Assembly (NCBI RefSeq): GCF_001194135.2
Contig: NC_068986.1
Coordinates: 95,881,700 to 95,945,699 of the forward strand
DNA from: Octopus bimaculoides
Taxonomy: Eukaryota
Length of the DNA: 64,000 bases
Direction of reading: 5' to 3'
Below, in pieces: positions 14,301-55,924 of the stretch. The first letter of the stretch is position 1, and each line of letters begins with the position of its first letter. The notes beneath the pieces were generated by a model that was not told where the DNA came from, ran no database searches, and saw nothing but the letters and a program-made list of their open reading frames with translations. The translations under genes and the position numbers were made by a program.

Positions 14301-17300
14301 AGAACCTGTGTCTATGTATCTTTGTTTGAAAAGATGATAAACGTTTAGCTGAACCTGTGACCCTGTTTTGATACCCACGTAAAGCATTTCTCCTACATTA
14401 TATTCCAAATATTCATTAAAAAAAGAAAAAACAAAATAATGAAACTGTAAAATTTTCTATTCTTGTTAATTTGTTATTACTTTCTGCTTATGTATGAGAT
14501 CAAGATTTTGTCAATGTCTTCTCTCTAGGTCCTTCCAAAACTGCAGAGGCTTGAAGTAATTAATTTTGGTGATTGTCTTCTGAAGACTGGAGGTGCAAAA
14601 GCTATAGGTGAAAGTTTGAAGACATCACACACATGTTTAAAAGTGAGTTGTATTCATTTTATTATTGTCAGATTTGTTGACTTGCTAGTGTGGTAGGAAT
14701 TGTGAGAGTTTTTAGATAGATAAACTATTGTACTGCGACTTTCCTTTTTCTTGGTGCAAACCTAACATTAAGGTATTGTGTAAGATGTCAAAAGAATTTG
14801 GGGATCGGACTGCTGATCAATTAATTGTCTCTATCTCTAGTTTAATCATCTTATTGCCATATTTCTAATGACGTATACTGCTTATGTGCTTCAGTAAATT
14901 CAGAAATTGACTAGGAATGCATATGTATCTCGCAAAATAACTTTATCATTAATTATGGTGTTTGTATGCAAATCATCCTCATTTAACATGTTTTCCATGC
15001 TGGCATGGATTTGACAGGAGCTGTCCAGACTCCAATTGTCTGTTGTGGCATGGTTTCTATGGTTGGATGCCCTTCCTAATGCCAACTACTTTACAGAATG
15101 TGTTGGGTGCATTTGCGCAGCCCAGTATTAGTGCATTTTATGTGGCACCAGCACCCGTAAAGGACAAGCCTGTATGTGTGGATGACCGTGATTTTACTTA
15201 GCTTGACATGTCATCTCATGTACAGCAAATTGCCACAACTCTCAGTCCCTTGTCATTTTCTCAGTGATAAAGTTATAACAGAAGGTTCTGATTTGTATAT
15301 GATCATTTTCAAACAGACAATTTTTTATAATAGAATCAACAGCAGTGTCAAGCAGTTTGGTTTGGAAAAAAAATCAAATCTCTTTATAATAATTTACTAG
15401 AGTTGTGTGTGTGAGTGAGTATATGCTTCCTAGCCATGTAGTCTTGGGTTCAGTCCCACTGCATGGCACCTTTGACAAGTGTCTTCTACTGTAGCTCCAA
15501 GCCAGCCAAAGCCTTTTGAGTGGATTTGGTAGACTGAAACTGAAAGAAGTTCATTGGTGTGTGTGTGTGTGTAACAGACACGTACATCAAGTTAAATATA
15601 ATTGTCTAAAAACTTGTCTTACTGCTTTGAGTTGTATTCATAAAACTTGCCCCTGGATCTTAGTGGTTGAGCAACTTAAGGCCTAGGCCTGTCAGAACAA
15701 GAGTTTTGCTCCTAAGTAAGGATGGTGTCATGAGGAAGCTTTGATTTATAAATTCTAGATCTACCTGTAGATGGAAGTCATGTCGAGGAGAGAACTATTG
15801 ACTTCATCAAATGATAATCACTGCAGGATACATTTTGTTTTTCATTATGCATGTTCACACATGAACATAGCTTACACCAAATGACTTTCTAGGTACATTG
15901 TCTGGTGGAGAGCTGGCAATTAGAAAAAAAAGAGTAAGAAGTAAATGGAGTTTTGTTACATTAGCTGAATGAGGAAAAAACGGGTATAGGTTCATTATCT
16001 CAATGACTTGGTAATGACAATGATAATCATTTCAAGATTATAAATTTTGTGAATTATTAAACTAATTTTTAGGATATTTATTTACAGTATTTATATCTAC
16101 AGTTTCAATCACTTCAATCTCTAGTTGTCATTTGGTAAGATCCCAGTTTAGATCTGTCAAATGTAATGCTTATTTCTTCATATTGACTTCAATTAATCAT
16201 GGCTTATCTTGAAAGTTTTGAGATTTCACTAGTGTGATTGCTTATTTTTAGAATGACATTGTACAGTATGCATGAGAGGTTGGATCTGGTTTGTTTGAAC
16301 ATAAAACTAGTAGATTATTTAGGCTAGGTATAGCCATTCTAAATGCTAAAGGGTTAAATTCAGTTTAGGATCATGTAGATATCCAGGAATTCAACACTTG
16401 TTGATCTGTGATCAAGTGTAAATTGTAGGTATAAATATTTCAATACACCCACTAAAGATGATATTAAAAGATTGGAAAATTAATTTAATCAATCCATCTC
16501 AGATATTTAAATCTTTGATAATTACTGCTTGTATGATAATGTGACTTTTTCAAATATAAAAATATATTTTCTCCTGTTTGTAGCAACTTATATTAAGTGG
16601 TAATGAAATAGGAAGAGACGGCGCCACTATTGTAATCAAAGCAATGCAGAATAAAGAAAATTTGGAATTTGTAGAGCTCAATGGTAAAGTCTTTATTTAT
16701 TTATTTGTTTGTCTGTTCATTTATATTTTAATGAAATAATTTGAACTCCTGCCTATTGCATGGAACTGATGTGAGAGCACTAGTGTGGTTGTTCGACCTA
16801 TAAGAAATAACAGTGAAATATCCCTTAAATCAACTCTTGAATGAAGGTGGCTTTGGATACTGTAGTCATAGACATAGCAATATAACTGTCTGAAAAAAGA
16901 GATTAGGTAAAGCACCTTGCTAAATGCATTTCAAGCCAATAAGGAAACCTATATATGGTCACTTGACTGGCTAGAAATAGCAGCAAATCTCCGTCAAATA
17001 ACTTATTACTGTCTTAAGAAAAGTACATATTGTATACTTAGTCCTGAATATCCTACAAAGACAGGATGGTCCTAGCTGAATGCCATTGATCAGGGATGAC
17101 TTGCAGCTTAACAACTGGCAGCATTCATTGGAAAGGTAGTGGAGTGACAGAATCAGTATAATGGTAAATGAAATACTATGTCCTGTTTACTATTTTATTT
17201 TACTTGTTTCAGTCATTTGACTGCGGCCATGCTGGAGCACCGCCTTTAGTCGAGCAAATCGACCCCGGGACTTATTCTTTGTAAGCCTAGTACTTATTCT

Positions 17301-20300
17301 ATCGGTCTTTTTTACCGAACCGCTAAGTGACGGGGACATAAACACACCAGCATCGTTTGTCAAGCAATGCTAGGGGGACAAACACAGACACACACAAACA
17401 CACACATATATATATACATATCTACGACGGGTTTCTTTCAGTTTCCGTCTACCAAATCTACTCACAAGGTTTGGTCGGCCCGAGGCTATAGTAGAAGACA
17501 TTTGCCCAAGATGCCACACAGTGGGACTGAACCCGGAACCATGTGGTTGGTAAGCAAGCTACTTACCACACAGCCACTCCTGTGCCTATAATTGTTTCAT
17601 TACAATTCCATTATGTCCTAAGTTCAAATCTTACCAGGCCAGATTTGACCTTTCATTTCCCATAGGTTAATTAAGTCACTGAAGCTGTTGTGAGCTTAAA
17701 GTACTAGTGATACAGTGAGGGTTGATTCAATCATTTTTTATTTTCATTTTCTCTACATACTTCTGCCCTTATTTCTGTCTAAAAATCATTATTAGAGATA
17801 AATATTACTTTACAGTGTTTTATTCTATCTTGTTTTCTCCTTAGTTCAATTCTTTTTAGAACTGGTTTCCTTCAGTTTTGTGCACATGTGTGTAGCGTGT
17901 GCACACATATCTGAAAAAAAAAAACATTTACATGTTGACATGCATAGATGCATACATCTGTCCTGTAATTGTAATTTTATTATCGCTAATGCATGAATTT
18001 CTTTTCTTCTTTTGCTTTATGATTGTTGTTGCTATCTTTCAGAAAATTGCATAGGTGAGGATGGAATAGAGAACATTAAGGTTTATATGGAGTCTATTGG
18101 GAAACTTGATTCTCTTGGCTCATTCAGGTAAGTGTCATATTGTTTGATAAAATATTTAGTTCAGTTCGTTCTTGTATCGATAACTGTATTGCTTGTTTAA
18201 ATGCCGTGGAAACCAGGGTAAACTCTGGCATAATAAACTTGTAGGCTTGTGGTGGACCTAAGATGAGGCAATGTAACTAACATTACCCTTTAAGTTAGAA
18301 ACTATTATTACAACAACAATAATAACATTAATAATAATTCAGTGACACACTTCTGATCCACTAATTATACACTTCTCATATTTGTAAAGCACCTTTGACT
18401 AAAGTGTTAAAGACAATTTTCAATAGTTGAAAGGTTTGTATAGACCAGTATCTATATCTTCACTTTCTGTAGTATCTTCCATCATAGTTATGTGTAAGAA
18501 ACATCTGGTAAGTTATGTTCCAAGAGAATGGATGAGGATAACTGTGAAAAACTATCACAACCTAGTGGTTGAGGGAACCTATGGAAGAGATAGACCCAGG
18601 AAGACCTGGGATGAGGTAGTGAAGCACAAGCTTTGAACATTAGGCCTCACCAAGGCAATGACTAGTGACCGAGACCTTTGGAAATATGCTGTGCTTGAGA
18701 AGACCGGGCAAGCCAAGTGAGACCATAACCTGTGGCCTATGCCAGTGGTGTAACCAGCCCACTTATGCATACCTTTCTTTCATTGGACACTAAACTCTGC
18801 TTGTGAAGATCTGTTGAGGCAAGTGAAATTGAAATAAAATTCGCTGACGTGGCCTATGAGAGCACCACCTGACTGGCTTCCATGTAGTGTAATGTTAAGA
18901 GCACCATCTGAGCATGATCGTTGCCAGGGCCGCTGACTGGCTCCTGTGCTGGTGGCACATAAAAAGCACCATTCAAGCGTATCGTTACCAGCGTCGCCTT
19001 ACTGGCACTTGTGCCGGTGGCATGTGATAAACATTTGAGTGAGGTCATTACCAGTGTCGCTGGACTGGCTCCTGTGCAGGCGGCATGTAAAAAACACCAT
19101 TCGAGCATGGCCGTTGTCAGTACCACCTGACCAGCCCTTGTGCCGGTGGCACATAAAAGCACCCAATACTCTCTCGGAGCAGTTGGTGTTAGGAAGGGCA
19201 TCCAGCTGCCAGATCAGATTGGTGCAGCCATCTGGCTCGCCAGCCCTCAGTCAAACCGTCCAATCCATGCCAGCAGGGAAAGCGGACGTTAAGTGATGAT
19301 GATACTTATTTTCAAAATTAATTAAAACAAATCTGATAGATAATTCTAGAAATATATTCAGAAAAGGGTTTAACAAGTATTCATTTGCTCAATTAGTCTC
19401 ACAATTGCACTCTAACCTTATAATGATTTGGCTTTGGTTTCATTTCTTTTTCAACTCTCAAAAACTATTGTTCAGTGATTGTAGATTCTTAAATGGTGGT
19501 GGTGTTGGTGGATCTCTGTCATACACCAATGAAAATTCAGTTATTCAGTCAACTGAACACATAATCAGCGGAAATAGTGTATGCTCTTAACATAAACAGT
19601 AGAATCAGCATGACACTGTGTGTGACAAGGCTGTATCTTTGGAATTACAGGCACAATCCTTCTATACAATTTCCATCTATTGGTATGGCTTAAACTTGAG
19701 GCTATAGAAAATGAAATTTGCCCAGGATGCTATGCTGTAGGATCAAACCTTGGATTTTGTGTATTCAAAGTGAACTTCTTAATCATTTGGTTATATGATG
19801 CCTACAGATTCTTTGAAGACCACTAACTAAATGCTTTTTCCCTTGAAACTGTAACGTTCTGGAATTCCCTGCTCAACATTTTTGTCAGGAGCTTTGTATT
19901 AACTGCAGCCACTTAACCAGTTTAGGATTTTGGCCTTTAAAGGCCCTGAACATTGCCTCTCTTGTCTAACAAAATTATAAAGATTTGTTATTTATTTTCT
20001 ACAATTCTCTTCTTACCTATGTTTTTCCAGCTGACATTGACCTGTAAATAAATATGCAAGTAAAATGTAAACTGCATTGTACTCTACATGTATTTGATGT
20101 AGTTCTGAAGTTTCTTTTCCTTTTCTCAGTGATGATGAAGGTGATGATGAAGAGGAGGAAGAGGACGAGGACGAGGATGAGGAAGAAGAAGAAGAGGAAG
20201 AGGAGGAAGAAGAAGAAGAGTATGAAGTGAGAATTTTTATTATTATTAAAAAATATTTTCTGCTAGTTCTCCACATTTGCACAAATGAGTTAGCTATTTG

Positions 20301-23300
20301 TAGGATTAATTGCATTTACAACAGTATGAAATCACTTTCTACTACTGACCATGAAGTAGAAGTTTTTTTTTTTATCCCATATGATGTAATCTGTTTGCTG
20401 ATGTATCATTTGCTCTCTTGAAGTGTGATGTTCGGTAGTGAATGCACAAGACTGGAGGTAAATGAGTTGTATATATACATATATATAGTCAAATCATCAT
20501 CATTTAATGTCTTTTGCAAGCTAGCATGGCTTGGATGATTGAACAGAATCTAACAAGTTCATACTTCAATGCCTGCTTTGGTATGGTTTTCATCTCTAGA
20601 TATCCTTCCAAATACCAACCACTTTACAGAGACTACTGGATGTACTCACTCTAATTTGTAAGACTAAGGTCCCACTCAGCTGAGTGGCACTGTGGTAGAG
20701 GGAGATGACTTTGAAAGGTTAAAGTATGAAAGAAAGGAGAGGGATAGGTTTATTGCTGTATAGGAAATACATGGCTTTTTTTGTTTAACATAGGATTTAA
20801 TTTGAGGAAGATTTGGCTGCTCTTTCTCCCAATTTTGTAACTGTGCAGAGGCTTTTTCTTAGCTTAAGTGTTTAAATCAGACAGGTGAAGTAATGCATGA
20901 TGAGAAACAGTATTGTAGACCAAAAGAAGGGATACGAGATCATGGGGAGAATGAGTTGCTCTGTGTATAACCAGTAATCTGTTATCCAGTATAATCTGTT
21001 GTGTGGTCAAGTGTAACATCCTATCCAGGTAGATATTTCTCAACTGCTTCTTACAAGCATGCAGCTTTTTGGAATTATACATAGTATTACACTGGTTTAC
21101 TCCTATTATTTTTTATTTATTTATTCACTTATTTCTGTAAATTCCGTTTTGTGACAGGATGAAGACATTGAAGGAGAGGAATATATGGATAGCCTTAAAG
21201 CCAGCGAATTGATGAAGACTCCACCACATAAGGTAATAGATTCTTTCCTCTTATAGAGACTTTGAGATGATGGTTAGGTTTATCTGTCTTGTTAATGTTT
21301 ACTAACAAAGCTTAATTTGTTTGTTATTATTTCAGTTTGATTTTTGTTCCAACTCGATTGTAATCATAGTAAAACTCCTGCACTTTTTTTCTAACTTTCT
21401 GCTGCTGATACCAGATTATAGATTGAGATGGAGTAATTAAGTGCAAGACATATATTTAGTCTTACGCCACTGTAAATTTTGGATTAAACTTGTAAAGAGG
21501 AATGTACCTGGCTGCCAGTTTAAAATAATGTCACTTCAGCCATGTTGGATCTCATTAAGTTTATGCATTACATTGGATTTCAATAAAGGGTAGAAGATAA
21601 AAGAAAAGATGATAGTGATGGAATGCCATAGCACAAGGCTTTTGTATTGTGAGTGCATGTCTGTGCACGTGCCAGGTTGCTTTGAGTATTACTGGTAGCA
21701 TGTAACTCGGTACAATCTGTTATATTGTTGGGTTGTTAATAACTAAATTGACATCCCCGGCAGGACAAAGAAATGTGTCAAAAGAGAAGATGAACCTAGA
21801 GATAGCCTTTACCTATCTAGCAATAGTGCATAAGCACAAATACTCGTGATGGTGGTAAATGAATGAGCTTTAAGACTATTTTGGATGTGATGAACTCTTA
21901 TCAAAATATCTGTCTCGCAAAGAGGTTGGTAGGGTTCCATAGCCATGGTGAGGGCAACACTTATCTGAACTGTTCTACACCTTTCTGGGTGAGTTCAGAA
22001 CAATGAAGGCTAGGGGTGGGGGTGGGGTATTCTGTAGGGAAAAACAAACTGTGACATTCAGTTTTAAGGCAGTTTCTAACAGATTGGTTTTGCAGCTAGG
22101 AGGAAGTAACAGTTGTCTCGGGTAACTCTTACCACTGGCCCTATCTCCTTTGTAGTTAATGATACTAGGAAATGTGCACCTCAGTTCCACTTTTGAGTAT
22201 CATTGCATAGATATCTTCTCCTGTAATCTAGATCATGGATCTTGGATATGGTTGTTGTGGAAGTTGGAGCATAATGTATGTTTGTAACATTGAAATACCA
22301 CCACTTCCATAGTTTACTTACAGTAGGTATAGCATAAGCTGTACCACTTGCAATTTTCCAGTCACCTGTGTAGCCGCGTTCTCTGTTAATTGTCATCAAA
22401 ACATCTGCAACAGGAGATGATGGTTATCAGTGAATTTGACAGACAATTATAAGCATACGTGTGTGTCTGTATCCATGTTTTAGAATAGGTGCACTATCTG
22501 TGAGTGTTGTTGTATGAGGTGACTAAAAGAGATGATATCAGAGAAGGCATCCAGCAATAAAACGGTGCCTGAAAAAGTCACACACATCCCATACTAACAT
22601 AGAAAGCTTAGAGAAAAATAATGAGATCTATATATATATATATATATGTGTGTGTCGTATAACTGGCACTCATGCCGGTTGTGCATAAATGACACCCAGT
22701 ATGTTGTTCTTGAGAAGACTTGTCAAGCCAAGTAAAATTGTAGTCCTGGCCGATGACAGTGTTGCATACCTGGCACATAAAAAGCACCCTTTGAATTTTG
22801 GGCCTCACAGAACCAGTGACAAGTGACTGAGATCTTTGGCAACATACTGTGCTTGAGAAGACTTGTCGAGCCAAGTAAGATCATAGTTGTGGCTGATGCT
22901 AGTGCTTAGAAACTGGCACTTGTGCCAGTGACATGTAAAAAACACGCACTACATTCTTGGAGTGGTTGGCATTAGGAAGGGCATCAAGCTGTAGAAACCT
23001 GGTGCAGCCTACCAGTATAGTCAAACTGTTCAACCCATGCTAGCATTGAAAACAGACTTTAAATGATGATGATGATGATGCATGTGTGTGTGATGAGAGA
23101 GAGAGAGAGACAGATCTGAGGCAAAAGGTCTTTAATGTGCAGCATGCAGGTGAAAAGGCAGACAAGATAAAAGGAGGAACTGTGTATTACATCTATCAAG
23201 AGGGTGAGGGCATCAGAGCAAAAAGCAAGGCCTACAACATCTGAAGAATGTCACTGACTCCTCAGAACTGGATGGCATTCACTCAGCAGCACAATTTGTC

Positions 23301-26300
23301 AAATGCTTGTTTTTTCATGTTTAGTAAAAACAATTTCTTTTTCAATTCATTAAAGAATTTACTGATTTTTCAAAGTGGAATCTTCATTGAACACATACAT
23401 GCATACATACAAACGTATATCCATACATATATACTCTAGGCATGGTTGTGTGGTTGAGAAGTTTGCTTTACAGTCATATGGTTTTGGGTTCAGTTTCATT
23501 GCATGCACCTTGGGAAAGTGTCTTCTGTTTTAGTCTCAGCCAACCAAAGCCTTGTGAGTGGATTTAGCAGATGGAAACTAAAAGAACCTGAACATGTATA
23601 TATGTATGTGTTTGTGTTTTTCTATTCTTGTTTTAACATTGTCTACTAATTGTAAACAGATGTCACTGCCATACAGATGGTATTGTTTGTTTACAATCTA
23701 CAATGAAATCTTGTCCAGCCATCATGCTGCTCATGTTCAAAAAAAGCTAGAAGAAACATTACATTGCTTTGAAACCAGTGCGGGTTAGTGACAGGAAGAG
23801 CATCTGGATAGAGAAAATCTGCATCAGTGAATTTTGTCTGACCTATGCAATTATGGAGAAGAGAACATTAAAATGATATGGATAATGTGTGTGATTGTTG
23901 ATATTCCACTTGCTACTGCTTGAGTGAAACGGTTAAGATGTTTGCATTCCTTCTTGATATTATGTTCAAACACTGCACTTTTGAACACATGTAAGAGTTG
24001 CCAACAAGAAAGGTATCCGGTTGTTAAATTCTCCCTCGGTTATGTTCTCATCTAACTCATACTAGCATAAAAACAAACAAACATTAAATTAATATAAATA
24101 CACATTCACCATCAATAAATGATTTTAGTGAACCATGTACAAATAAACTTGGTTTTCCACAATACTTGGAAATCCGTATAGGTATTTTTCTCAGCAGGTT
24201 TTACAGGTTGGAATTGGAGCATGTAATCTTATAATTGAAGTTAAAATATTTTCTTGCTACATGACACCCTAGAATGATTACTCAAAGACCTAATCCCATA
24301 AAGAAATATAGATAATAGCAGATTTTGATGAAGTTGTTTGTCTGTTTCCAAGTTTCTGCTAATGTAAAGAAAAAGATACATAATGTGTGCATTGTCTCTG
24401 AGTTAAATGGTAATAATAAGAATCACTGAGAGAGGGTGAAAATGAGAAAAACGAACAAAGAAAGAAGGCTGTATGATGTAAAACAATGTGAGGGGAAGTA
24501 TGATAAGATGAAAGACATGTTCTAAGTTTCCCTTACATTTTTAATGTGTACATTGCATGTATGCATGTGTGTATATATATATATATATGTACATACATAT
24601 GTGTGTGTATTAGAGAAAGCTGTATAAATAGAAAAGAGCTTTTCTTTTAAATGTGTTATATTAAAGTTACAACTATATTTGAATTGGATCTTTTTTTTTT
24701 TTTTCTGTTGGTGATTTTCCATATTTCTTTTTTAGCCCTTTTTGTTATTTTGAAACACTACTATTCTTAAATCCATTTGTCTATTACCATTTTAAGCTCC
24801 AGTCCCATCCTTGAATTAAAGTGATGGTAATAATGCTGTGTTATTCATGTATTTCACAGTAGTTCATAACTAATACTGAAATTCTGTTAAAACTGATAAA
24901 ATAATAATTATACTAGGGCTAAACATTGCTAAATTTCATGACTATTTTGGCATTTACTGTTGATTTTTGGTTTCGATTCTGCTGTTAGTGATGCCTCCAC
25001 AGTTACCATATTTTGTCGCATTCACTGTAATAAATCACAAATCAGCATACGGATACATCACACAATGGACAGTTTTATTTGTTGTAACAGTGTTCTCTTG
25101 ATGCTTTGCAACCAACTGCAAAGCATGGATGGACCAATGAATGTAGGAATGCAGTTGCTTCAAAGTAAGTATAAAGGGCAAATAAAGAAAGTCTTAATAC
25201 AAAAGATCAAACTTAAACATAGTCATGTCTAGAAAGGTTGTTTCTTTTCCTCTCTCTCTCTCTCCTTCTCCCTCCCTCTCTGTGCTTGCACATACACACA
25301 TAAATGGAAAAACTGAAGGCACACGGCTTAGAGTGTTGGGCTCACAATCATGAGGTAGTGAGTTTGATTCCTGGCCCAGGTTGTGTTGTGTTCTTGAGCA
25401 AGACATTTCATTTCACGTTGCTCCAGTTCATTCAGCTGTAGAAATGAGTTGCATGGAGAAGGGAGGCTGATATGCATGAACAACTGCTAGTCTTCCATAA
25501 AGAACCTTGCCCAGGCTTGTGCCTCAGAGGGTAACTTTTTAGGTGCAATCCCATGGTCAGTCATGACTGAAGGAGGTCTTTACCCTTTATATATGAAAAA
25601 AAAAAAAAAAAAAATTTAATTTTAAAAAGTATAAAAAGAAAATAATTTATAAACAAATGGAAAATGAAGACATAATTTTCTTAAATTACAATATTCAATA
25701 GTTAAGAATTGACTCCTCTTCAGTGAGTTTGTTAAATTAGTTCACTACTTTTCTTCTAGTTTTGTTTGAAAGTTTCATTGTGACTAGTTGTGCATATATC
25801 AGAATCATTTCATATGGTGAAAGTAAACATTTTTTTTTTTGTGTTAGCTTCCATATCGGAGAAATCAGTGGAGCTTGATAATACAATTTGTTCTTTTGGT
25901 CCTTGGTATGTTCTGTGGTATTTCATGAGTTCACTGTCCTGTGGTTTGTCATATTGCATTGTGTAGTCTTTGGTATGTTAACTATGTTTTTAGTGTTGCT
26001 ATTGTGTTAGCTGTTAATATTTTCTCTTCACTAACCAACTGTGAACGGCTTTTAATGGTTTCTACATTAATCAGTTCTTGCTTCATTATTTTCTTATTTG
26101 TCACTCCTTGACATATTCATTTGCTTTAGTTTCTAAACAACCCCTCTTTCACATAATGTATTGAAACTGTGCTTGTTTGTTCTACCCTTGGTTGAGCTTT
26201 TCTTTTATCTACTCCTCATATAAGCTCACTAACAAGACAACAATCTAAAATACTCTCTAGTACCAGGTCTCTATGCTCTCTGCACCAGAACTCCTCACCT

Positions 26301-29300
26301 TCAGTTCTGACTGTTAGTTTTGAAGACTGGCAGAAGGAACAGGAAGATTGCATGTGTGACCACTGGTTACATTGTTGTAGTGACTGTGATATGTACTTGT
26401 GTTTGAAAACTGTTTTCCTGTTCTGTTTGCAGGGTGACATTTGTGATGAGCTTGAAGAAATTTCTCTAAAACTGGAGAAAACCCAAATTTGTTGTGACCA
26501 ACTTGAAAATACAGATCTTTAAACAAAACCATTAATTTCTCTAGTTTTTGTTGTTGTTTTTTTTTATCATTGATGTTGTCTGACCCTAGGCCCCTATGTA
26601 GGTTATTGATCAATCACCAAGGTACAACACACAGGTCAATTGTCTGAGGTATACCATATCTCCACTTAGATGAAAACCACACTGTCATACTAACATACAA
26701 TATGACAGTGTAGACATGCACTCTCTCCACCATCTGTCTATTTCCATATACCTGCTGTTGTTGGTGTGCTTGGTCAGAGCCATGATCAAATGTTTTTCGA
26801 CTATCATCATTATCATTTAACATCCATTCTCCACACTGGCATGAGTTGGACAGTCTGACAGAAGCTGGCCAGCCAGAGAGCTGCCCAGGCTCCATTTTGT
26901 CTGTTTTGGCAGGGTTTCTACAGCTGGATGCCCTTTCTAAAGCCAACCACTTTACAGAGCGTACTGGGTGCTATTAACATGGCACCAGCTCCCACAAGCC
27001 CACAAAACTAGGACCTCTCAGCTGAATGAGGGACATAGAGGACATGCCTATGATCATTCATTTCTTTTATCAAGGACTTCATTGTCAAATATTTCCTTTT
27101 ATTCAAGAGATTTGATTGTTATTTTGTTGGTTGTGTATGTCAGCAAATTCTGCTGATGTGTCCAAGGTCTTCCTCTGCATTTATCACATGTTGCTGTTGT
27201 TTTAAAACCAGAATGAGATCAATTTTCGAGGTCTCTGATGAAGTCATTTGCTTTCTTCAAAGAAAAAACTCAAAAATCTCATTTACATCTAATTAATTTT
27301 AGTGCTGTATGCTAATTAAAATGCAGATGTTTATTACCTGTTATAACCTGTACTTCTTAAGATCTAGTTTTGGGAAGACGAGCTGAATTACAATGTCTTT
27401 TGTTTCACACTCAGAATAAATTTGAAAATAACTGTCCCTGATGCCTTCAGAGTTTGTTTTTGTTTAACCTTAGTTCAACCGAGGTTGAACAGTCCTATAA
27501 TCAAAGGCATTCCTACCAGGACTATCCCAACTTTTTAAAGTTATGCAGGACTGCCCTGTTTAACATAGCCTTTCCTTATTTAAAGCAGTAGAGTGTGATA
27601 TGTGGAAGATATGGCTGCCTGGCCCTAATAGGTTAGATGACTATGTTGAGGCTCCTGGGTCAACTACTTTCCCAGTAGAGATTTTCAAAGACCAGTGCTT
27701 ATGCTAGTTTATCGCAAATGACTGTGCTAGTCTGGTACACATTGATGACATCTGGGTGGAGTGAGCAGTAAGGAATAAAAGGATTTGCCCAGATTCTCAA
27801 CTAAGTTCCGGCAGTATGTTTGAACTCATGAGTCATGGACGGGTAGTCTAACACTTTACCCAAATAGCAAATATGTTGAGTTGTCACTGTACTACTAAAG
27901 ATCATATTCCATTCCCACTACATTCCATATTTAATTCATTTAATTAAATTTTCCAGAGTTGTTTGTCTTCTGTTTTAGAGAATTTCATTAAAATTTCTTT
28001 TGGTGCTCCACTATGTTATACCCATTTTACTGTTAAGTTATCATGCAACAGGCATCTCTGGATGTTTTTCCCCAAGTCATTTTTAAGTTATTATGCCACT
28101 CTGTGTTCATTTACTAAAATTCTATATATACTTCTCTAATCATTCTAAGATCTACAGAAATGGTTGGACTACACTAGCAGGTCCAATGAAACAAACTTAT
28201 TCAAAGATGTCACTATACATCTAAAACCAGACTTGCCGCATCTTGTTTTTTGCTATAGTCAGTTGTTGTCTCCTTTATGAGGCTCAGCATCGTGATGTCG
28301 TCCTTTGCCACATTTTCACATGTTTTCTTGTTCTGCAGGCACCTTCCATATGGATCTTTGGACACATTTTTACTTAACTCACTTTCTTCATATGCATCAT
28401 ATGCCTGTATCAGCGCAGCCTTTTTTGCACACTATAGTTCTTATGTCTTACTCCCATGCAGTATTGTATTTCACATGCAAGCAAAATACAGTCTATCCTT
28501 CCCTCAAAGTAAAAGTTCATTTATTGCCATAAAAGGTGGTAATTACTTAACTTTTCAAGTCCTTGTTCACTCTGGCTACTGTGCATTCATAACATCCACT
28601 CCCACTGTTGATTTGGTCAACAGAAGCTATCAATTACTTCTAGCAAACTTTCATGGATGCTGTTACTTATATAGGTAGCGAAAGGCAGACTGTGAGATGC
28701 ATGTACATGAAGTGCAGGCACAGACATTGAAAATGGAGAATATGTTACAGCTGTAAAGAAATGCAGCAAGCATCCTTCTCTGGATGTGTAATGTCATGTT
28801 GTTTCTTACCCCTGCTGCCCTGTTTCACTGGTTTTGATAGGGTACCAACAGCTCTCTTGCCAATGCTGCTGTGGTAGTTTGAACCAGAAAAGACATTTTT
28901 CAATTTATTCAGTTCACCTAACTGTAAATAGGTAGCATGGTGAAGAAGGGATCATTGGTATGAGAGATGCTAAAAATAAAATTTAAGATCTTAGACATAA
29001 CATTATAGAGAGCTGATAACCTTGTAATCTGGAATTACACAAACGACTGCTTAAGTACAAGGTGGTATCGAGAAGTTTCTGGGCTACTTCTGTAGTGCAC
29101 CAACAGATGGCAGTACATGGTTGTGTGTGCAGTGAATGACAGCACTGTGTTTACTTCACAAGTCGTGAAATTTGTGTTTTTTTTGCTCATGTGTATGCGA
29201 TTTTGTCATGGACAGGAAGTTGGAACAAAGAGCCAACATGAAATTTTGCATTGAACTTGGGAAGTCTACTACAAAGACACTGAGCATGCTTCCACAAGCT

Positions 29301-32300
29301 TATCGTGACAAGGCAATGGGTCATATGCAATGTTTTGAGTGGCATGGGCACTTCAACAGTGGAAGAACATCTGTCGAAGACAGTGAGCAATCTGGAAGAC
29401 CTACCACGAGCATCAACCCCAGAAATGTGGTATTGTGCATCATGAATTCGTCCCCCAGGGCCAGACCATCAATCAAGAGTTCTACTGCAACATTTTGAAG
29501 CATTTGAGGGAGGACACTCAGCAAAAGTGACGGGATCTGTGGGTCGCTAAGAATGAGTTTCTCGCCAAAAACAACATGGTATTGTTTCTGCACCCACCCT
29601 ACTGCCAGATTTAGCACCTGCGGACTTCCATCTCTTCCCCAAGATGAAAATGCAGTTCAATGGTTGCCGTTTTAACACTATTGTTGAGATCCAAAGTGAA
29701 TCACAGAAGGTCCTTGACTAGCTTACAGAAAACAACTTCCAGGCTGGATTCCAAAAGTGGCAGGAATGCTGGGTCTGGTGTATTGCTGCACAAGGTGATT
29801 TTTTTTCAAAGGAGAGGATGTTAAAACTTAGGTAAATAAGTTATTTTTTATTAAACATAACTAGTCCTGGAACTTTTTGATACCACCTCATATAGCAGGA
29901 ATGGAATTACCATGTTCAAGGAATTTAATCTTAGTATTACAATTACTACCAATATAGACATATTTATCTTCCTAGGTATAGCACTAAACCAAGCCAAAAG
30001 AAAGCTTATATAATTAAAGGTTCTAAACATCCTCTTGGTATAAAAAACATTTTAGTCAACAATACAGGTAGCATTATATCCAACATGTCTTCAGATAATA
30101 CAACCTTCAAAATAACAGTTAGTGCAAGTGGATTTCATGAAAAATTAGTTTTTTGACCAAATAGACTCAGTAATAGAACAAACATAGGAAACAACATTAT
30201 CTAGTTTAACTTGCCTTCTGCAAACAATTTAGAAATAAACACAGCTACAAATTCCTTAGCCTTCATTTAAAAGAACATTTCCCAATCAATTATAAATACT
30301 ACGCATTGTTTAACAAAAATAGCATCTAGGTCAGTTACTATTGTGCAAAATTGTTGGCAATTTGAAGGACCAGTCTGAACAAACCCCCAAGAAGTCAAGT
30401 GAAACTACAAGACAAAGCAAACTTAGTATCTCCATCATAGAAAAGACTTAACAAAAGGAATTATCTATAAATTTGGTCAGTCTGCTCAAGATTGCTCAGA
30501 TTAGTTTATCTTTGTGTGGCACTTGCACCATATAATAAATGAACTAACAGACACTTCAAACAAAAGGACAGAAATATTATTAAAATGTCATCACCAGTTT
30601 TGGTGATGCCAATTACAGAAAGTTTACAATATATTGTCTTTTGGTATTGAATGCAAATAATAATTTTGTTAGCACTGGAAACATCTTTTCACTGACATAA
30701 CATCTAATCATTGTCTGTAATAAAATAAAACCTGGAATATTTAGTATGTGTGTGTGTGTATGCATATGAGTCTACACACAAACACATTATTCATTACTAT
30801 TTTTTTAGTTGCACTTGTTTAGCAAATAATTTGATCTGAGATCATGTGTTTTCATTGTACATTTAAAACCTCATCATTGAAGCTCCATTTGCTGACTATA
30901 CACACACTATTGTATCACATATAGTCACTGTTGCTATAAAAAATACACATATACTGTTGTGCTCCCTTTTACTTTATTATTTTGTAATATGAATGTGTGT
31001 GTGTGTGTCAGTATGTTTGCATTAGTGCTCTACAAAAGTGTTCAGGAGCTACAAGCAGTATTGTTATAGCTTCTCCCCTATCAAGAAATTGTCTTGCTTT
31101 CTTTTATGAAAATATGTGAAATAAGAGATCTCTTACTTGTAAAGGGTTAGCAACAGGAAAGGCCTCCAGCTGTAGAAAGAAGCAGTTTCTTAATAGTATA
31201 TCCATCTAGCCCATACTACCATGGAAAAATAGATGTAAAAATGAATGAATGAACTTGCAGGGTTTGTGGAATTACACATTTTATAAACATTTGTATTTCT
31301 ATTTTGATGCATAAATTTATAGATCTTCATACCATTATTTCATTACATTAAAGAATTCAGTTACATCTTCCATTTCATTCCTTAAGTCAACTTGTTTAAA
31401 GCATAATACATAAACTTGTTTCAATATATTAAAGCATTCATTTCTTAGTTAAGCTTGTTTCAAATTTGAACACACAAACACTATGAGGAGCAACATAATG
31501 TCATAGTTTTTGGCATCAAAGTCTTTAGTAATATGTTTATGATTTAGTCACTCATACTCTGCTTCATAATAGTGCTGCTGCTTGAAATAGAGGGAAATAG
31601 TATGCCAGGGATTAGAGTACAGTTTAATAATCAAAGACTAATACATAATAAGGTGAAAGTAAATATGACAATGTATGTGTGTTTTTTTAATCTGTTAGCG
31701 TTTAAACTGGCCTTACCTGGCCCAGATATTCTACTTGTTTTTTGGTCAGTCATTCGAAAGCATTAGAATAATCTGAATGCTAAAGGCTTCAGTGTGTCTC
31801 TAGCATGATGATATAGTTTGTTGTTCTTGTTTCCATATTTTTAAGATTCTTATTCCTTCACTTTCAGGTGTCTGCCAGGGATTTCCTTGCCTTCCCGTCA
31901 CCTAGTAAACTATTACAAATGGGTACTGCTGATACAATAACAAAAAACATTAAAGCAGAACTTGGGGTGAGTGACACACCCTCTATTTTGGGGTGGTGGT
32001 CATTGTTGCTATATATTGTCAATAATTGTATATAAGATTACTTAAAGGTATCGTGATGGTGGTAGTTGTAGGAGTGTGGTTTTTGTGTGATTGTTTACTG
32101 TGCGTATGCTAGCTTAGATTAAGTACACTATGTCCCTGCATGTCTTAAAAAGCAATTAAAAGAGTTTTTGATGTGAAGGACAGTAAAAAATTGCTTCTGA
32201 GAACCTGTCAACTCATACCAGCATGGAAAGGAGAATGTAAAGCAATGATGATGATGAAGTACTGTGGTGACTATAGTAGCATGGTATCCTGCTTAGTAAA

Positions 32301-33117
32301 GTTGTTACTGTTGTGTTGTAGTCTTTTATGATGGATGTAGCAGTGTGTTGATTGGTGTACTAGTGTTGTGCTTGGTAGTGGTTATAGTCATGTAGTGACT
32401 AGTGTGTGGTGGTTGGTTAAGCTGTAACAATATAAATGCAAACGTATTATAACCGTAGAACCCACCAACTCATGTGAACATGAAAGTAGTAAATGTTCAG
32501 TAGTAAAATAATTATAAAATAGCAAGTAAGAGCAGGTGAGAGGGAATAATTTTCAAAACTGCATACTCTTACTTAAGCCAGGAACCAAATGTAGATGTCA
32601 AGAAGTGAGTGTAGAAGAGGGCAAGTTGGCTGCAATGGACAGAAATAAAAGATAGCTTTAGAAAATATGGACAGTTGATTACATGGTGGATAGCAGTGGT
32701 TCTCCGTAGTTTTGACTTCATGATCCATGGAAATCAAGTAAAAAAAAAACCATTAGCACATTTCACATGTTAAATGGAACAGAAAAAAGTATATTAAAAA
32801 TTATTGCTTATCCTGTATTTATTAATCATCATCAGGATTTTAATGTTGGACAGAATTCCTTGAGGCAGATTTTCTACAGCTAGATGCTCTTCCTGTCACC
32901 AATCCTCACCTGTTTCCAAGAAAGGCAATATTTGTCCTTGGCTGGACATGTTTTGATTGAAAATGAAGGGCATCACTTATATGTTGATGCTCATTTACAA
33001 ATGTCGCACACTGTCAAGATTTGAAGACTGAGACAAACACACTCTTGCATACACATTCTTTTATTCGTTTCAGCCATGCAGCTGAAGCACCATCTTGGTT
33101 TTTAAACTACATCACAT

Positions 33118-33159
<42 letters not shown>

Positions 33160-33583
33160 TTGTTTAAAAGAGTTCCNNNNNNNNNNNNNNNNNNNNNNNN
33201 NNNNNNNNNNNNNNNNNNNNNNNNNNNNNNNNNNNNNNNNNNNNNNNNNNNNNNNNNNNNNNNNNNNNNNNNNNNNNNNNNNNNNNNNNNNNNNNNNNNN
33301 NNNNNNNNNNNNNNNNNNNNNNNNNNNNNNNNNNNNNNNNNNNNNNNNNNNNNNNNNTTCAATACTTTCTTTCATGGTGCCATCCATTTTAATTTTATTT
33401 TATATTATATTATATATTGTATATTCCATATTCTATACCCCACATTGGTTCTGCAGGAATATAAATAAAACATAAAAAACAGACAGTGTTGGAACTCTTT
33501 TAAACAAAATAATATATTCCTCTATACACAATCATACAAAAAAACAAAAAAAAACCCCACCTTTTGTATTTATTTTTACTCGC

Positions 33584-33617
<34 letters not shown>

Positions 33618-36600
33618 CTATGGACAGGTTTCTTTCAGTTTCTGGCTACCAATTACACTCAAGACTTTGCTCAACCCAGGACTATAGTAGAAAACACTTG
33701 CTGTGTGGTGGGGCTGAACCTGAAACCATGTGATTGGAAAGCAAAACTTCTCAAGCACACAGCCGTGCATTCACTTAGCATGCTTGTGTATAACAATATT
33801 ATGAATAACAGGTTATTAAAGATACTTAAGTATTAGTGTGGATTTTCTATAGACATAAATTATATTTTCGAAATTCTGCAGCACACCTCCTATGACACAT
33901 TGGTCAAATGAAGCACTGGTACACACTCCTTTAATAACTGAATTCTGATAGTGCAGATTTTAGTATTGACCTAAAAATCCACTGAGTTTAGAGTTGACTT
34001 AAGAATAGTGAAATCAAAGATTCCATTCAAGTTTACTATTGCTGAAATACTTCTGTTTCTGCTATTCAATTCAATTATCTTACCATTTTCTTCAACTATT
34101 TCAGGAATCTTGTACAAATGTTGATGAAGTTGTTAAAACTTTCTTAAAGGTAAGTCCTTGTGTTGTTGCTTGTGAACTTGACTTAGGTTTTGTTAAGGAA
34201 AGATGATGCTAATGTTGCTTAGCCCTACATCAGCTCTGACTGTAGATTTATGATCAAAAGCGTTCCTACCATGACCATCCACAATCTCTCAGATGGTGTT
34301 TGTTATTTACTTGGGCATACATTATACAGTGTTCCTCCTTTCTCAAAATAGCAGGTTGTAATCTGAGGGAGTTTTGCTGCTATTTCTAGATTCTCAAACA
34401 ACTGTTGAGACCCTTTCATTGGCTCTAAGCTCCCTTCAGCTTGGTTGTGTGTGTATGACTAATTACCAAGATAATATCTCAGACTGCACACCTTCACATA
34501 CTTACTGTCATATTCATTCGTGTTTACATGTGCATATTTATAAATGCCTGCTTAAATATGCAATCATTATAATATGGTGATAAGCTCCCAGCATGCATGC
34601 TAAGCTCACAACTTGGTTTCATCTCTTAGTTGAGCTAATTTAGTTGAACAACATGTACCCATGTTAGAAAACATTATTATTAAAAGGAGTGTAACGAGGG
34701 TGGGGATTGACAGGGCCTGGTAGTGTTTCTCACACCTCTTTACATTCTAAGTTCAAATCCCAGTATGGTCAACTTTTCCTTTCATCCTTTCAGGGTTGAT
34801 AAAGTAAAGTACTAGTCAAGTACTGGGGGTCAATATAATTGACTAACACCCTCCCCTCTAAAATTGCTGACCTTGTTCCTAAATTAGGAACCATTATCAG
34901 AAAGGCAATAGATTGCAGAATCAGTAGAGATCCAGACAAAATCCTACTACTACAGAAATTGTAAAAAAAGAATATCTGAGAATTGGAATAAAGGCCTTAT
35001 AGTAAATTCTGAGCACAAATCCCACCGAAGTACTGGGTGACTGCACCTCTCCCTCAAATTTTGTGACCTAGTGATTCAGTTCAAAAACAGATGTTACTGC
35101 TACAACTACTGTTGTGGTAATAAACATTGATCGTTTAGATTCATTTATGTGAACTCCATGGCAAATAATCTCTGTGCTTGTAGTATAAAAACAGGAGAGG
35201 ACTTTCTAAATCCTTCCAAAATATGAAAAAATATGTATGTAAAAAGGTATCAATTGTTAAAATTTATGTTACTGATATTACAAAAAAAAAAGTGGAGTAT
35301 TTTAGGAAATAGTGTTATAAAAGAAATGCTGGCTGCATATTCAACTGTCTATATATACCAGAGATCTGTATTTGTTAAAGAGTGGGAACGTCTTGTAACT
35401 CTACACACTGAAGCACTAACTTAACAGATGTTTTGTTAGCCTGAACTGCTAAATTAATGAGCTTCATGGACACTATGGCACTCTAGAAATAACAACCAAA
35501 TTGTCCTCAAATCTCACCATACTGTTTTAAAAGACTGAATGGTTATAGCTATTGTAGGTCTGCTCAGTTAGGGTTAACTTAGTACTACAGAGCAACAGCG
35601 ATAGCCACCATATTAAATACTATAGATATTGTGAGAGACTGCTTTGTGACCTGCTGGAAAAAGCAGCCAAATTTCCTTCAAATCACATTCTAATGTTTAA
35701 AAAATAAAGGAAGGACAGATTAGATAATATAGTTCTAGATACACCAAATACAGATGGGAAGGATACAACAGCATCACATTTAACCATAGATAGATCTGTG
35801 ATATTTGGGCCAACCAGGAGCCAGACAACAACCCTAGATGCACTACATGAGATAAAGTCTTCAACAGTACTCTTGTGATCAATTGATTTACAGGACTTAC
35901 CTACATACTGTGTTGTGTTTATAGTGTTCTATAGTTTTATGTCACTGGAATTTTGTATTAGGATTGCCTTCAATATTTATCTTTGTATTGTAATTTCCAT
36001 GTTTCTTCCTTAACAGATAGCATCTGTTGTGGATTCTCAAAATGAAAAGTTAAAGAAAACTGCCAACCAGTGTACAGGTAAGTTGTTCTTGGATTCCTTT
36101 GAATCATACAACAAGGCTATTTATTGCAAAATTAACCTGCTTTTTTCATTAACCATCTTAGATGTTCTTCAATATTTATATATTGTCCCTATACAATATA
36201 TAATTCATGCTAAATTCAGTGCCCAAATCTTGCCTAAATTTGTACACTGAACCCTGGCATAATGAACTGGATACCAGAGTGCATCTTGTCCAGCTCTTTA
36301 CTCACTGCACCAACTCAGCTGTTTTACGTCTGTTTGGAACAATGATTTTTTTTTATATAGATATAAAACATAGGCGTAGGAGTGGCTGTGTGGTAAGTAG
36401 CTTGCTTACGAACCACATAGTTCTGGGTTCAGTCCCACTGAGTGGCGCCTTGGGCAAGTGTCTTCTACTATAGCCTTGGGCCGACCAAAGCCTTGTGAGT
36501 GGATTTGGTAGATGGAAACTCAAAGAAGCTTGTCGTATATATATATATGTTTGTCCCCCCAACATCGCTTGACAACCGATGCTGGTGTGTTTACTTCCCT

Positions 36601-38574
36601 GTAACTTAGCGGTTCGGCAAAAGAGACCGATAGAATAAGTACTAGGCTTACAAAGAATAAGTCCTGGGGTCGATTTGCTTGACTAAAGGCTGTGCTCCAG
36701 CATGGCCAAAGTCAAATGACTGAAACAAGTACAGGAGTAAAACATTATCTTTGTGGTTGATGTGGGAAATGGGTTGATGTCATGTTCATAGCTTTCATGA
36801 AAGCAATGAAATCTGAATTAGTAACAGTTGGATTATTAACTTGCAGACTTTGCTTCCTTTTAAACTTAGCTGCCAGCTAACTCCTCTTCATATGTATTTG
36901 ATAAAACTATTTTCTCTTGTTTTCTTTGTAGATTCCTTATTTTCAGAGCTTTTAAAAGCAAATCCAGAAGAAAATACCTCATTATTGTTCAACTCACTCT
37001 TAGTCCACATGGGTTTACTTAAGGTAAGTTCAGTAAGTTTATCCTACTGAGAACAGTATTGTTTATTTGATAGTATTTACCTTAAATATATATCTACTGT
37101 ATAGGTTACATATAATTACTCTATTCTATCTGTAAACACTGTTCTCAGTGAGTTAACTCTTAGGCAGGTTGCATCTACTGGTACCACTATTACTTATAAC
37201 TATTTTAACCATTAACCCTATTGTTAGTGATTTGTCCATATTATCATTTCAGTTGGTAGTACTGTGTAACACTTGCTGTTACTGTTTTTTAACTGTTGAG
37301 TACTACTACTTATGACTGTCCAAATTATTAAACTTTGTTATCTGTGTATGAACCCTTTCTTATTACTGCCAAAGTATTTTACTATGTGCATCTCCGTTTT
37401 TAGAATAGGTACACCATGTCCTTACATGCCATAAAAGGCATCTAAGTGGTTAGCATTCAGTGAGTGGCATTCAACCATAAAACACTGTCTCCAAAAGCCC
37501 TGCCCAACCCATCTCAGTATGGAGGTGCAGATATGAGTAGCATAGGATAACTTGCAGTAGTTTTCTGAATTAGTATGGCATATTTAAATTTCTGATTACA
37601 TAAACATAACATATTAAAATTGTGTAACCTAGTCTTCTAGTTCTGATAATGTGAGCAATTTCAGTTTTCCTTGGATCAAATTTTTTATTATTTACATAAT
37701 ACAATACATGATGCTTTCTTTACCACACATAATGTTTGTGAAATTCTATTTTTCTGTGTAACGAAGTGTAATATATGGTGTACTCTGTACTATATGTAAT
37801 GTTTGTTAAACTATTGCTTCAGTGATGTCACCTGGTTTAAAATGAGCAATGTCTCATAAGGCTTGCTAGAAGAAAAGTTTGCATGTGTTTGATGTAATAG
37901 CTATCATTACATTTATGTGTGTGTGGATTCAGAGTTTGCTTTAAAATCAACTTGTTTCAGATCCTGTCTCTCTGTGGGACACCTTGAGCAAATGTATTCT
38001 TCTGTACCTTCAAGCAACCAATGCCTTGTGAGTGGAATTTTCAAAAGGTGTATGTGTGTGTGTTTTATCATGTGCTAGAAAGACAAACAACAAAGTTGGC
38101 CTCAGCAGGATTTTGAATTCAGAATGTAATAGAAAGGAACTAAAAGAACCACAAGTCATTTTGTCTGATGCTCTACCATTTCTGCTGGCCCAGAGGTGTT
38201 ACTATTATGTGCAATTATTAAAATAAATTTTGATGTGAATTTAAAACCTAAAGCTGATGTTGACTATATGGGTTAACAAAATTTTTATAAATGTTTTTGA
38301 TAGTGTTGACCATTTATTAAATTTGTTGGTTTTTCTTTTTAAAAGGGAGAAGACAAGAAATATAAATCACCTGGAGACCTCAATGGTACCTTGATAGTTC
38401 TAGAACATTGTGTACAACAGGCTTACTTCCCGAGCTTTGGGCGAGATATTCTCAGTGCATTCATTAGCCGGTGAGTAATAGTAGTAGTACGACAACAGCA
38501 GCGGCATCTTTGCCTTCTTCTTCTTTGTTGATGTCTTTGTCTTTTTTGTCTTCATCATCATCATCATCATCATC

Positions 38575-38611
<37 letters not shown>

Positions 38612-54448: not shown

Positions 54449-55924
54449 AGATTTATAAGAATCGGCACTTTAATCTATTAACTTTACCCTTCAAATTATC
54501 TCATTTGTTTTGCATTCATTTACTTAGTAACTTTTAATGTATTCCATTACAAACTTAAACTAAAGAAGAGCGCAAGTACGCAGGCGAATTAAGCTATCTT
54601 AAATAAGTAAACATTCAAATGATAAATAAATATGTCTTTTTCCTAATAGAATTAATGACAGTGTGATTTTAAAGAAGCTTTATGACTATAGTGGTTTCTA
54701 AATTTCAGTTTACTAATATGCACTAACTTATGTTAATTACGTTTTCTAGTGAAACAAGTGTGTACTTCGCTTCTTGCATGTTTTAGATTTGCTGTCGAAA
54801 CAAGATGATTACCGCTTACGTTGCTTGTTAAACATTGTCTTTTTAAACATTTTCTTTTCTTATTATTTTTCCCTTTAAAACATTGTCTGTATTCGATTGC
54901 TTCGGACAGTCTGAAAGTGAAATAACTAGTTTCTCTAGAATTGTTCAGCTTCCCCCGATTTTTCACGAGAAAAAAAAAAAAACGTCTTTCTGTGAATACC
55001 AAAAATGTCCGCTTTAGTAAGACACACCGATTGATATATATATCATTTTGCCTTTTAGTTCCTAACTTTTAAACTAGAAGAGAGTTTACCTATCCGTTTT
55101 ATACTGAATGACACTGTAGGATATTGTTTGAATCATCTATCGATCAGTTCACTGTATTGCCAGAAATCACTTCCTGTTTGATTACTGCTAACAGGTGATG
55201 CTGAAATTGACGAACATTTGGTTAGTTTCCACTCTTGAAATCAAGTCCCTTCATGCAAGCCAACAAGGGTAATTCCATGTAGTTGCCTTTCCTTTTAAGT
55301 CATACCTTATTGTCTCAAAAGAAGAAAGGCAATGCAATCCTACATACATGAAGTTGGGCTGATCACAGCTGAGATACTGTTTTCGATCATAGATCTGTTC
55401 AATCAAAATTCTTTGCATAGATCTGAAGAAAGTTTTAGGTCATCCTTGATTGCATGGACCTGTGATCAGAAGTATTCCAACCATGACCATTCCATTTTTT
55501 CTAGTACTTTTCCCTGATGCTGTGCAATCAGGACTGTAGGGTGGGATTTGAAAGAAATTTGATTGTTGTTTCAAGCAGATCAATAACTACTTAAGTGCTC
55601 TCGTTATCTGGAACACAGTTACACACACACACACACACACACACATTTATATATTAAAAGCTACATGTTCAAATGCATGCATTGTGTGACTATTAAAACT
55701 ACAGAAAATATGAAATTAAGGATTGTTTACAAGTATATTAGTAATTCACCCAAAATAGCATTTTCTGATAAATATGAATATCAGTAATATGCTAGGATTC
55801 ATCTAAATGCTATGTAAGCTCTGTGGTGACCTGTTTGCTTGTGATATTATTTGAGAATTATTTAACTAGTACAGCAACATGTTTCTGTTTTCATCAAGGT
55901 TTCTGGCTCCTTCTGTCAGCAACA

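Follow-up and report, generated by a model that had tools for sequence, protein, structure and literature searches.

In the textbook view, RanGAP, the GTPase-activating protein (GAP) of Ran, is soluble in fungi, and animals have added to it a SUMO-modified domain that anchors RanGAP1 to RanBP2 at the nuclear pore, the soluble pool of animals being formed by unmodified full-length RanGAP1. In Drosophila, Sd-RanGAP retains its GAP activity while its C-terminal region is missing; it originates from a truncating gene duplication, is selfish and is mislocalised. The RanGAP1 gene of Octopus bimaculoides, carried by a 64,000-nucleotide stretch of contig NC_068986.1 (positions 95,881,700 to 95,945,699 of the forward strand; hereafter the window, all octopus coordinates being counted from its first letter), is unlike this Drosophila case: it is a single locus, characterized by a predicted choice of last exon and by a conserved tail. 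Judging from sequence comparison, segment 26433-26522 (+) of the window probably corresponds to the coding sequence of an alternative last exon that dates back to early animals.

The canonical metazoan RanGAP1, represented by the human protein (PDB 9B62 chain G), is of the long-isoform type. In the octopus gene, exons 1-11 are identical in both predicted forms. The long isoform continues into the RanGAP1_C domain and the LKGE site, whereas the short form possesses neither of them and also lacks the region of the C-terminal nuclear localization signal. The latter signal has been reported in mouse RanGAP1 in a study that mentions neither isoforms nor splicing (Cha et al. 2015, PMC4624696). Fungal Rna1p provides another point of comparison. 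In the S. pombe protein, as in the predicted 461-residue octopus isoform, a leucine-rich repeat (LRR) GAP domain is followed by an acidic tract and then by a short tail, and the SUMO/Ubc9 domain is absent. In fungi, however, the Rna1p-type form is the only product of the gene, while in the octopus a second isoform would exist beside it.

RanGAP1 proteins devoid of the C-terminal domain (CTD) are already present in the public annotation of several phyla, as pipeline predictions. Examples are found in Halichondria panicea (XP_064404921.1), Saccoglossus kowalevskii (XP_077864731.1), Owenia fusiformis (CAH1777387.1), Sinanodonta woodiana (KAL3880177.1) and Mactra antiquata (KAL4230322.1). They share with the window the divergence point, the lack of RanGAP1_C and the terminal motif, in phase 0 wherever genomic DNA was read. 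The window exon differs from them by the addition of a register resembling the N-terminal helix of RanGAP1 and of a degenerate second copy of the motif, and by a more divergent sequence. It is thus an additional, unusually elaborated member of a kind that is already annotated. Literature searches returned no published account of a CTD-less RanGAP1 splice isoform, of its tail or of its link with Rna1p.

The octopus gene was modelled by tblastn with RanGAP1 homologues, a search for junctions and the assembly of the coding sequence (CDS). Exon 11 (21158-21232, +), the last one common to both isoforms, can be aligned to the EGD..DPxLQVKGxAIxPxKQ exon present in other animals and ends with ...KTPPHK/gtaatag, in phase 0. 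Exon 12 (31868-31966, +), preceded by cactttcag, also starts in phase 0; the C-terminal domain begins with it, and its acceptor is the competing one of the long isoform. Intron 11 is therefore 10,635 nucleotides (nt) long. The candidate exon lies within it and consists of 29 codons followed by a TAA stop. The sequence just 5' of it is ctgttttcctgttctgtttgcag/G, with a splice border at 26432/26433. Its putative acceptor (26411-26432, +) assembles a polypyrimidine tract with 15 pyrimidines out of 19 and a cag/G border, and its exclusion zone is free of AG from -22 to -3. The 11 confirmed acceptors of the gene contain between 11 and 17 pyrimidines out of 19, and the 26433 acceptor is as good as these constitutive ones; in intron 11, an equivalent strength is reached at three of the 650 AG dinucleotides. 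The short route reads ...KTPPHK/GDICDE..., and the long one ...KTPPHK/VSARDFLAF.... When the 12 exons from 2157 to 26522 are joined, every border being AG/GT, a product of exactly 461 amino acids is obtained. LRR is the only kind of Pfam family detected in it (LRR_6), and its LRR GAP domain matches human RanGAP1 (9b62_G; E = 2.5e-131, 441.8 bits) and S. pombe Rna1p (E = 7e-49). Downstream, exons 31868-38738 joined together encode RanGAP1_C (PF07834, 95.9 bits), and the MGLLK/GEDKK junction (37023/38346) creates the LKGE sumoylation consensus. Splicing to 26433 instead of 31868 would therefore remove the entire SUMO/Ubc9 domain.

Most of what a previous sequence-only reading of this DNA had claimed about the exon is borne out by these results. 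The translation of 26433-26522 (+) is exactly the 29-codon frame it described behind a strong acceptor and in the phase of exon 11; the 12-exon join yields the length of 461 residues that it gave, and the LKGE site and SUMO/Ubc9 domain are indeed encoded downstream. The possibility that the segment belongs to a high-copy repeat, which it had raised, is not what is seen within the window: 26150-26800 is single copy, the nearest interspersed repeat being located at 26803-26989. Conversely, the extra junction 26312^26433 that it had envisaged receives no support, as no in-phase upstream exon can be read in the sequence. The AATAAA hexamer it had cited as the nearest one is present at 27415-27420, but an ATTAAA at 27315 is closer.

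The frame of the candidate exon is open for 79 codons 5' of the acceptor, amounting to 108 codons in total (26196-26519, +). This is longer than expected for AT-rich intron DNA, and no in-phase upstream acceptor was seen. It may be due to chance, or give rise to read-through products if the upstream part of the intron is retained. Neither this frame nor an antisense open reading frame (ORF) at 26314-26613 was kept as a gene, since neither exhibits a credible Pfam match. The putative 3' untranslated region (UTR) of the short form covers 26523-27440 (+); its end is placed according to the hexamers ATTAAA (27315-27320) and AATAAA (27415-27420).

The same intron harbors a tail exon in other animals. 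In the Saccoglossus locus, the exon-11 equivalent (...EDPALQIQGTAITPRSQDDK) ends at position 23426 and is followed by the tail exon (KSTEDLADALDKLKL, then a stop) at 24918-24965, and then by C-terminal-domain exons at 28361, 29094 and 29428. In the Mactra locus, the exon-11 equivalent ends at 21530, the tail exon is found at 22863-22913, and C-terminal-domain exons at 30144, 31018 and 32380. The window tail exon, at 26433 between 21232 and 31868, occupies the same intron. Pairs of isoforms were looked up in protein clusters for four phyla: Halichondria (short X2, 420 aa; long X1, 571 aa), Owenia (short CAH1777387, 435 aa; long CAH1777386, 521 aa), Sinanodonta (short KAL3880177, 434 aa; long KAL3880176, 576 aa, under one locus tag) and Saccoglossus (short, 428 aa; long, 613 aa). 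All four pairs are identical through the exon-11 equivalent, and then continue either into the tail or into ..DFLxFPSxxKL... Finally, a Logan contig of 1840 nt (L002, run SRR26439018) contains a short-isoform ORF that runs for 429 codons without interruption, with 484 nt past its stop. Being intronless and holding a complete short form, it looks like a transcript, and expression of the short mRNA therefore seems to occur in one species or more. The proposal of the sequence-only reading that the alternative terminus arises by splicing is thus strengthened by the finding of the tail exon at this intron position in two other genomes, those of a hemichordate and a bivalve, and by the divergence of the pairs of four phyla at this point; as it had suggested, no duplication is needed, since the choice of last exon would take place at a single locus, within an intact gene.

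A protein search with the LRR exons and the tail revealed, among its matches, many RanGAP1 proteins of 380-463 amino acids without RanGAP1_C. Thirteen CTD-less proteins, from gastropods, bivalves, an annelid, a crinoid, a hemichordate, two sharks and a sponge, were assembled into a set from which the window was left out, and all 13 terminate with the motif D-Φ-xxx-Φ-xx-Φ-x-Φ. With the later addition of the tails of Batillaria (a gastropod) and amphioxus, the spacing is observed in 15 out of 15 metazoan tails. The tail reads ...PDLCDELGKLTLT in the Logan contig, ...DDLVSELDRMKLS in Mactra, ...LDIADEMNNLKLS in Sinanodonta, ...NDIAASLDKLKL in the annelid Owenia, ...DDLADQLDKLNLS in Elysia, ...EDLADALDKLKL in the hemichordate Saccoglossus, ...DDLTETMANLKL in the crinoid Anneissia, ...QDLAAELGKLSFSPE and ...QDLPAQLDNLSLSPK in the two sharks, and ...EDLAEQLESLTL in the sponge Halichondria, where it is annotated "isoform X2". 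MAFFT aligns window copy 1 under this motif (DLADQLDKLNL). Among the 120 proteins listed, no bony vertebrate one carries the tail, and no short isoform was found among the tetrapod and insect proteins listed. The shark proteins, from Mustelus asterias and Heptranchias perlo, are named "RanGAP1-like" and possess the conserved tail, with gene ranges of 590 kb and 468 kb, respectively. Such ranges imply either very long introns or merged models, and these proteins are either RANGAP1 isoforms or products of a separate short paralogue. To note, the Anneissia contig ends ~0.5 kb past the tail exon.

A 13-column log-odds matrix was derived from these 13 tails and used to score the whole window in its six frames (124,811 positions). 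The best-ranking position is copy 1 of the tail motif (26436-26468, +; 13-mer 26430-26468), at 10.29 bits. A second copy (26487-26519, +; 13-mer 26481-26519), degenerate with a Thr at Φ3, ranks third at 9.24 bits; like the orthologous tails, it ends at the stop codon. The next unrelated match of intron 11 reaches 6.15 bits, ~4 below copy 1, while the best unrelated site of the window, at 10090, scores 9.43 bits, ~1 bit under it. The matrix score alone is unremarkable, and the weight of the argument rests on position. Copy 1 has the correct strand and phase (phase 0), and it lies within the orthologous intron, one codon past one of the three strong acceptors; from the matrix scan and the acceptor count, ~3e-4 such coincidences are estimated to occur by chance. 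Copy 1 is taken as the orthologue of the conserved short-isoform tail. The DNA similarity between copies 1 and 2 is weak (shuffle p = 0.036), and an internal tandem duplication of the exon is a possibility, with weak support at the DNA level.

The tail also resembles the C-terminus of fungal Rna1p. The S. pombe protein (PDB 1YRG, 1K5D) terminates with ...EEEKEDKELADELSKAHI, as confirmed with a longer query. Its end, KELADELSKAHI, and that of the Saccoglossus short form, EDLADALDKLKL, both lie at the extreme C-terminus, right after the acidic tract. With the metazoan tail matrix, the last 13 residues of the S. pombe protein, taken as one position fixed beforehand in this one fungus, obtain 5.36 bits, which corresponds to p = 1.4e-4 against the six-frame null and to p = 2e-3 against internal RanGAP 13-mers. 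KELADELSKAHI is similar to DLADALDKLKL, with an Ala at Φ3 in S. pombe. From the likeness of the tail to the 11 terminal residues of S. pombe Rna1p, the short form probably retains the ancestral C-terminus. This support, of a modest kind, suggests that the tail goes back to the C-terminus of the opisthokont ancestor, the exons of the C-terminal domain having been added downstream of it. A search of the PDB with the 24-residue tail returned a designed coiled coil as its sole match.

The spacing of copy 1, Φ1-xxx-Φ2-xx-Φ3-x-Φ4, is that of a class-1a nuclear export signal (NES) recognized by CRM1. An NES is located at the other end of RanGAP1: the human protein's N-terminal helix (residues 5-17) occupies the NES groove of CRM1 in a 2025 cryo-electron microscopy structure, and its deletion mislocalises human RanGAP1 (PMC12246119). 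Our reading of the human sequence together with this structure places a Thr at Φ3 of this signal as well. Its octopus counterpart is the N-terminal helix of exon 1 (2220-2255, +), which ranks first of ~124,800 positions with a matrix built from 25 such N-terminal helices. The same matrix places fourth an overlapping register of the candidate exon (26454-26489, +), which resembles the N-terminal NES helix (TLAKTQV in human). Three NES-like registers are thereby contained in the 29-residue peptide. An AlphaFold2 model based on a 39-sequence alignment (mean predicted local distance difference test, pLDDT, of 87.3) folds residues 435-458 as a single helix (pLDDT 77-89), preceded by a disordered acidic linker (pLDDT <50). 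The human N-terminal NES and the window tail share the same hydrophobic spacing and an amphipathic helix, at opposite ends of the protein; the former is present in both isoforms and its CRM1 binding has been demonstrated, whereas that of the window tail is predicted from the pattern. The likeness between them may be convergent.

Three further statements of the sequence-only reading concern this tail. It had proposed that the motif fits a class-1a NES, which is correct for copy 1 and holds for the 13 matrix tails and the two later ones. It had likened the motif to the vertebrate N-terminal helix (LAETLAKTQV), and at the level of the pattern this resemblance stands, given the fourth rank of the exon register. 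It had finally compared it with the yeast Rna1p tail: for S. pombe, the C-terminus was verified and is similar.

Several observations weigh against the identification of 26433-26522 as a conserved last exon with an export signal. Held-out orthologous tails score 19-23 bits in the matrix versus 10.3 for the window tail, which is therefore considered a divergent member. With a 16-column tail profile, HMMER ranks the ORF first among 669 intron peptides, yet with E = 0.67; owing to this weak value, the ungapped matrix scan and the positional argument were used instead. In other species the stop is located 0-3 residues past the motif, whereas the window exon comprises 17 extra codons, an extension treated here as a lineage-specific elaboration. 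The first poly(A) hexamer is 793 nt past the stop, as compared to 118-484 nt in other species, and a SINE-like repeat lies inside the putative 3' UTR, albeit outside the coding exon. A 14-tail profile run against a collection of 5.8 billion proteins and 1.84 billion representatives retrieved no cephalopod sequence; it otherwise returned exon-11-equivalent fragments and the two tails of Batillaria and amphioxus. Lastly, the pattern from which we infer a CRM1 export function is common to many amphipathic helices. Some of these points would fit an open frame that arose fortuitously, next to an equally fortuitous acceptor-like site, in an intron that is long and AT-rich: the exon is short, its lead over the unrelated site at 10090 is ~1 bit, and its HMMER E-value is poor. 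It is the top match of the window, however, that falls in the orthologous intron with the right strand and phase beside one of the three strong acceptors, and the second match, 51 nt downstream, ends precisely at the stop. An origin as a chance ORF is very improbable in view of this placing. The same observations can be turned into the proposal of a relic, a descendant of the ancestral tail exon that would be unspliced here, or spliced at noise level, leaving the long pore-anchored isoform as the only one. The window tail is the most divergent one seen, it lacks the stop that usually follows the motif at once, the first hexamer is unusually distant with a repeat inserted downstream, and the protein collection returned no close short-isoform protein. 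This silence says nothing about the short form, since no close relative is found in the collection even for the LRR region: the best protein matches to the LRR exons and tail are molluscan, with ~48-58% identity. A tail-only protein search yielded two candidates that share words with the query, none of which scored; this outcome is neutral, because a query with the conserved exon 9 came back likewise empty. A degenerate DNA pattern for DICDELEEI, searched in metagenome contigs, gave five matches, all of them unrelated and due to chance. Moreover, the molluscan classes diverged a long time ago, and the four hydrophobic positions, the frame, the phase and a top-3 acceptor have all been kept since. 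The relic is rated as improbable because an unused 30-nt motif, together with its frame and acceptor, would not be expected to survive such a long divergence.

A less likely, though live, alternative is that the exon is used and that its tail is not a CRM1 signal. The helix could then, for instance, associate with itself or with some other partner, or pack against the GAP domain or the acidic tract. The NES call is indeed made from the pattern alone, the pLDDT of the helix is high for a free peptide, RanGAP1 already possesses an N-terminal NES so that a second one is not obviously needed, and Φ3 is an Ala in S. pombe and a Thr in window copy 2. The verified human N-terminal NES likewise harbors a Thr at this position, though, and a spacing kept in all 15 metazoan tails, acidic flanks and a free C-terminus after a disordered linker form the typical context of a working NES.

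If 26433-26522 is, as preferred here, an alternative last exon, the pre-mRNA would be spliced from exon 11 to 26433 and then cleaved and polyadenylated within intron 11, near 27.3-27.45 kb; by the other route, exon 11 would be spliced to exon 12 at 31868, leading to the long isoform. The 461-residue product of the first route would start with the N-terminal helix and continue with the LRR GAP domain and the acidic tract, up to a short linker and a 24-residue amphipathic helix at its C-terminal end. Devoid of RanGAP1_C, it would lack the SUMO-acceptor lysine and the docking surface for Ubc9 and RanBP2, and would adopt the architecture of fungal Rna1p, i.e. that of a RanGAP untethered from the pore. 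Its tail may act as a class-1a CRM1 NES beside the N-terminal one, which would keep the GAP activity outside the nucleus. Use of the exon in O. bimaculoides, the position of the poly(A) site, solubility of the product and CRM1 binding are all presumed in this scheme.

The other exons of the gene, all on the + strand, complete the model. Coding exon 1 (2157-2319) includes the N-terminal helix, and its putative start is the first ATG of the open frame. Exon 2 (5619-5746), which belongs to the LRR GAP domain, was identified by tblastn with homologues, junctions and AG/GT borders. Exon 3 (8949-9008) and the LRR exons 4 (10738-10917), 5 (12382-12516), 6 (12635-12793), 7 (14529-14642), 8 (16584-16683) and 9 (18043-18127), with which the LRR domain ends, were delineated by homologue tblastn, junctions and CDS assembly. 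Exon 10 (20130-20226), deduced from junctions and CDS assembly, encodes the acidic tract (...EYE). On the opposite strand, 20013-20315 (-) is a 100-codon ORF with a poly-serine run; it was rejected as a gene, being a mirror artefact of the GAA/GAG repeat. After exon 12, the C-terminal domain is encoded by an exon at 34105-34149 and by three others detected by tblastn: 36943-37023, ending with ...LVHMGLLK, whose 5' border is putative; 38346-38470, GEDKKYK..., which forms the LKGE site with the preceding one; and 38669-38738, with which the long isoform ends. Between 34.2 and 36.9 kb, one or more additional exons of this domain are expected but were not located. Runs of N mark assembly gaps at 2384-2807, directly after coding exon 1, at 33177-33357, in the intron following exon 12, and at 60686-61477.

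The remainder of the window contains repeats, decayed transposon-like sequences and part of another gene. The SINE-like (short interspersed nuclear element) repeat of the putative 3' UTR (26803-26989) has at least 10 copies in the window, with 75-83% identity. The repeat is ~190 nt long and occurs on both strands with 67-83% identity, at ~5299-5460, 6256-6439, 10210-10453, 15018-15110, 19154-19303, 20570-20642, 22928-23076, 47679-47841, 60462-60645 and 63731-63907. The translated frames that recur across the window correspond to it. Within intron 11, an open frame at 29169-29680 (+) displays a weak match to a Mos1 transposase helix-turn-helix domain (PF17906, 20.9 bits for a cut-off of 24.1) and has the appearance of a decayed transposon of the mariner type; at 52840-53196 (+), a fragment that looks alike has no Pfam match. 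Downstream of RanGAP1, exons of a second gene are found at 55800-57040 (+), one of them with a Walker-A motif that we take to resemble those of the RAD3/XPD-family helicases (RTEL1, FANCJ). Pfam analysis of these short exon pieces gave no match.

Taken at their broadest, these comparisons raise the possibility, advanced here tentatively and short of an even chance, that animals have kept an Rna1p-type C-terminus by means of an alternative last exon since before the split of sponges, the tail serving as a second CRM1 signal for a soluble pool; in the octopus it would be elaborated into a 24-residue helix with two to three NES registers, in tandem or overlapping. The occurrence of the isoform in sharks and amphioxus, and in none of the listed tetrapods and insects, would suggest a lineage shift towards unsumoylated full-length RanGAP1 as the soluble pool. 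For the gene of the window, an annotation with two 3' ends is warranted, and its divergent, expanded tail is useful for finding which residues matter. More generally, a dedicated Rna1p-like isoform, which owes its end to a conserved alternative last exon, is a second product encoded by many RanGAP1 genes of animals, in a range that extends from sponge to shark. If the tail is a working NES, the division between pore-bound and soluble GAP would be set partly by RNA processing in most animal phyla, and the origin of the C-terminal domain could be read as a set of exons added past the ancestral stop.

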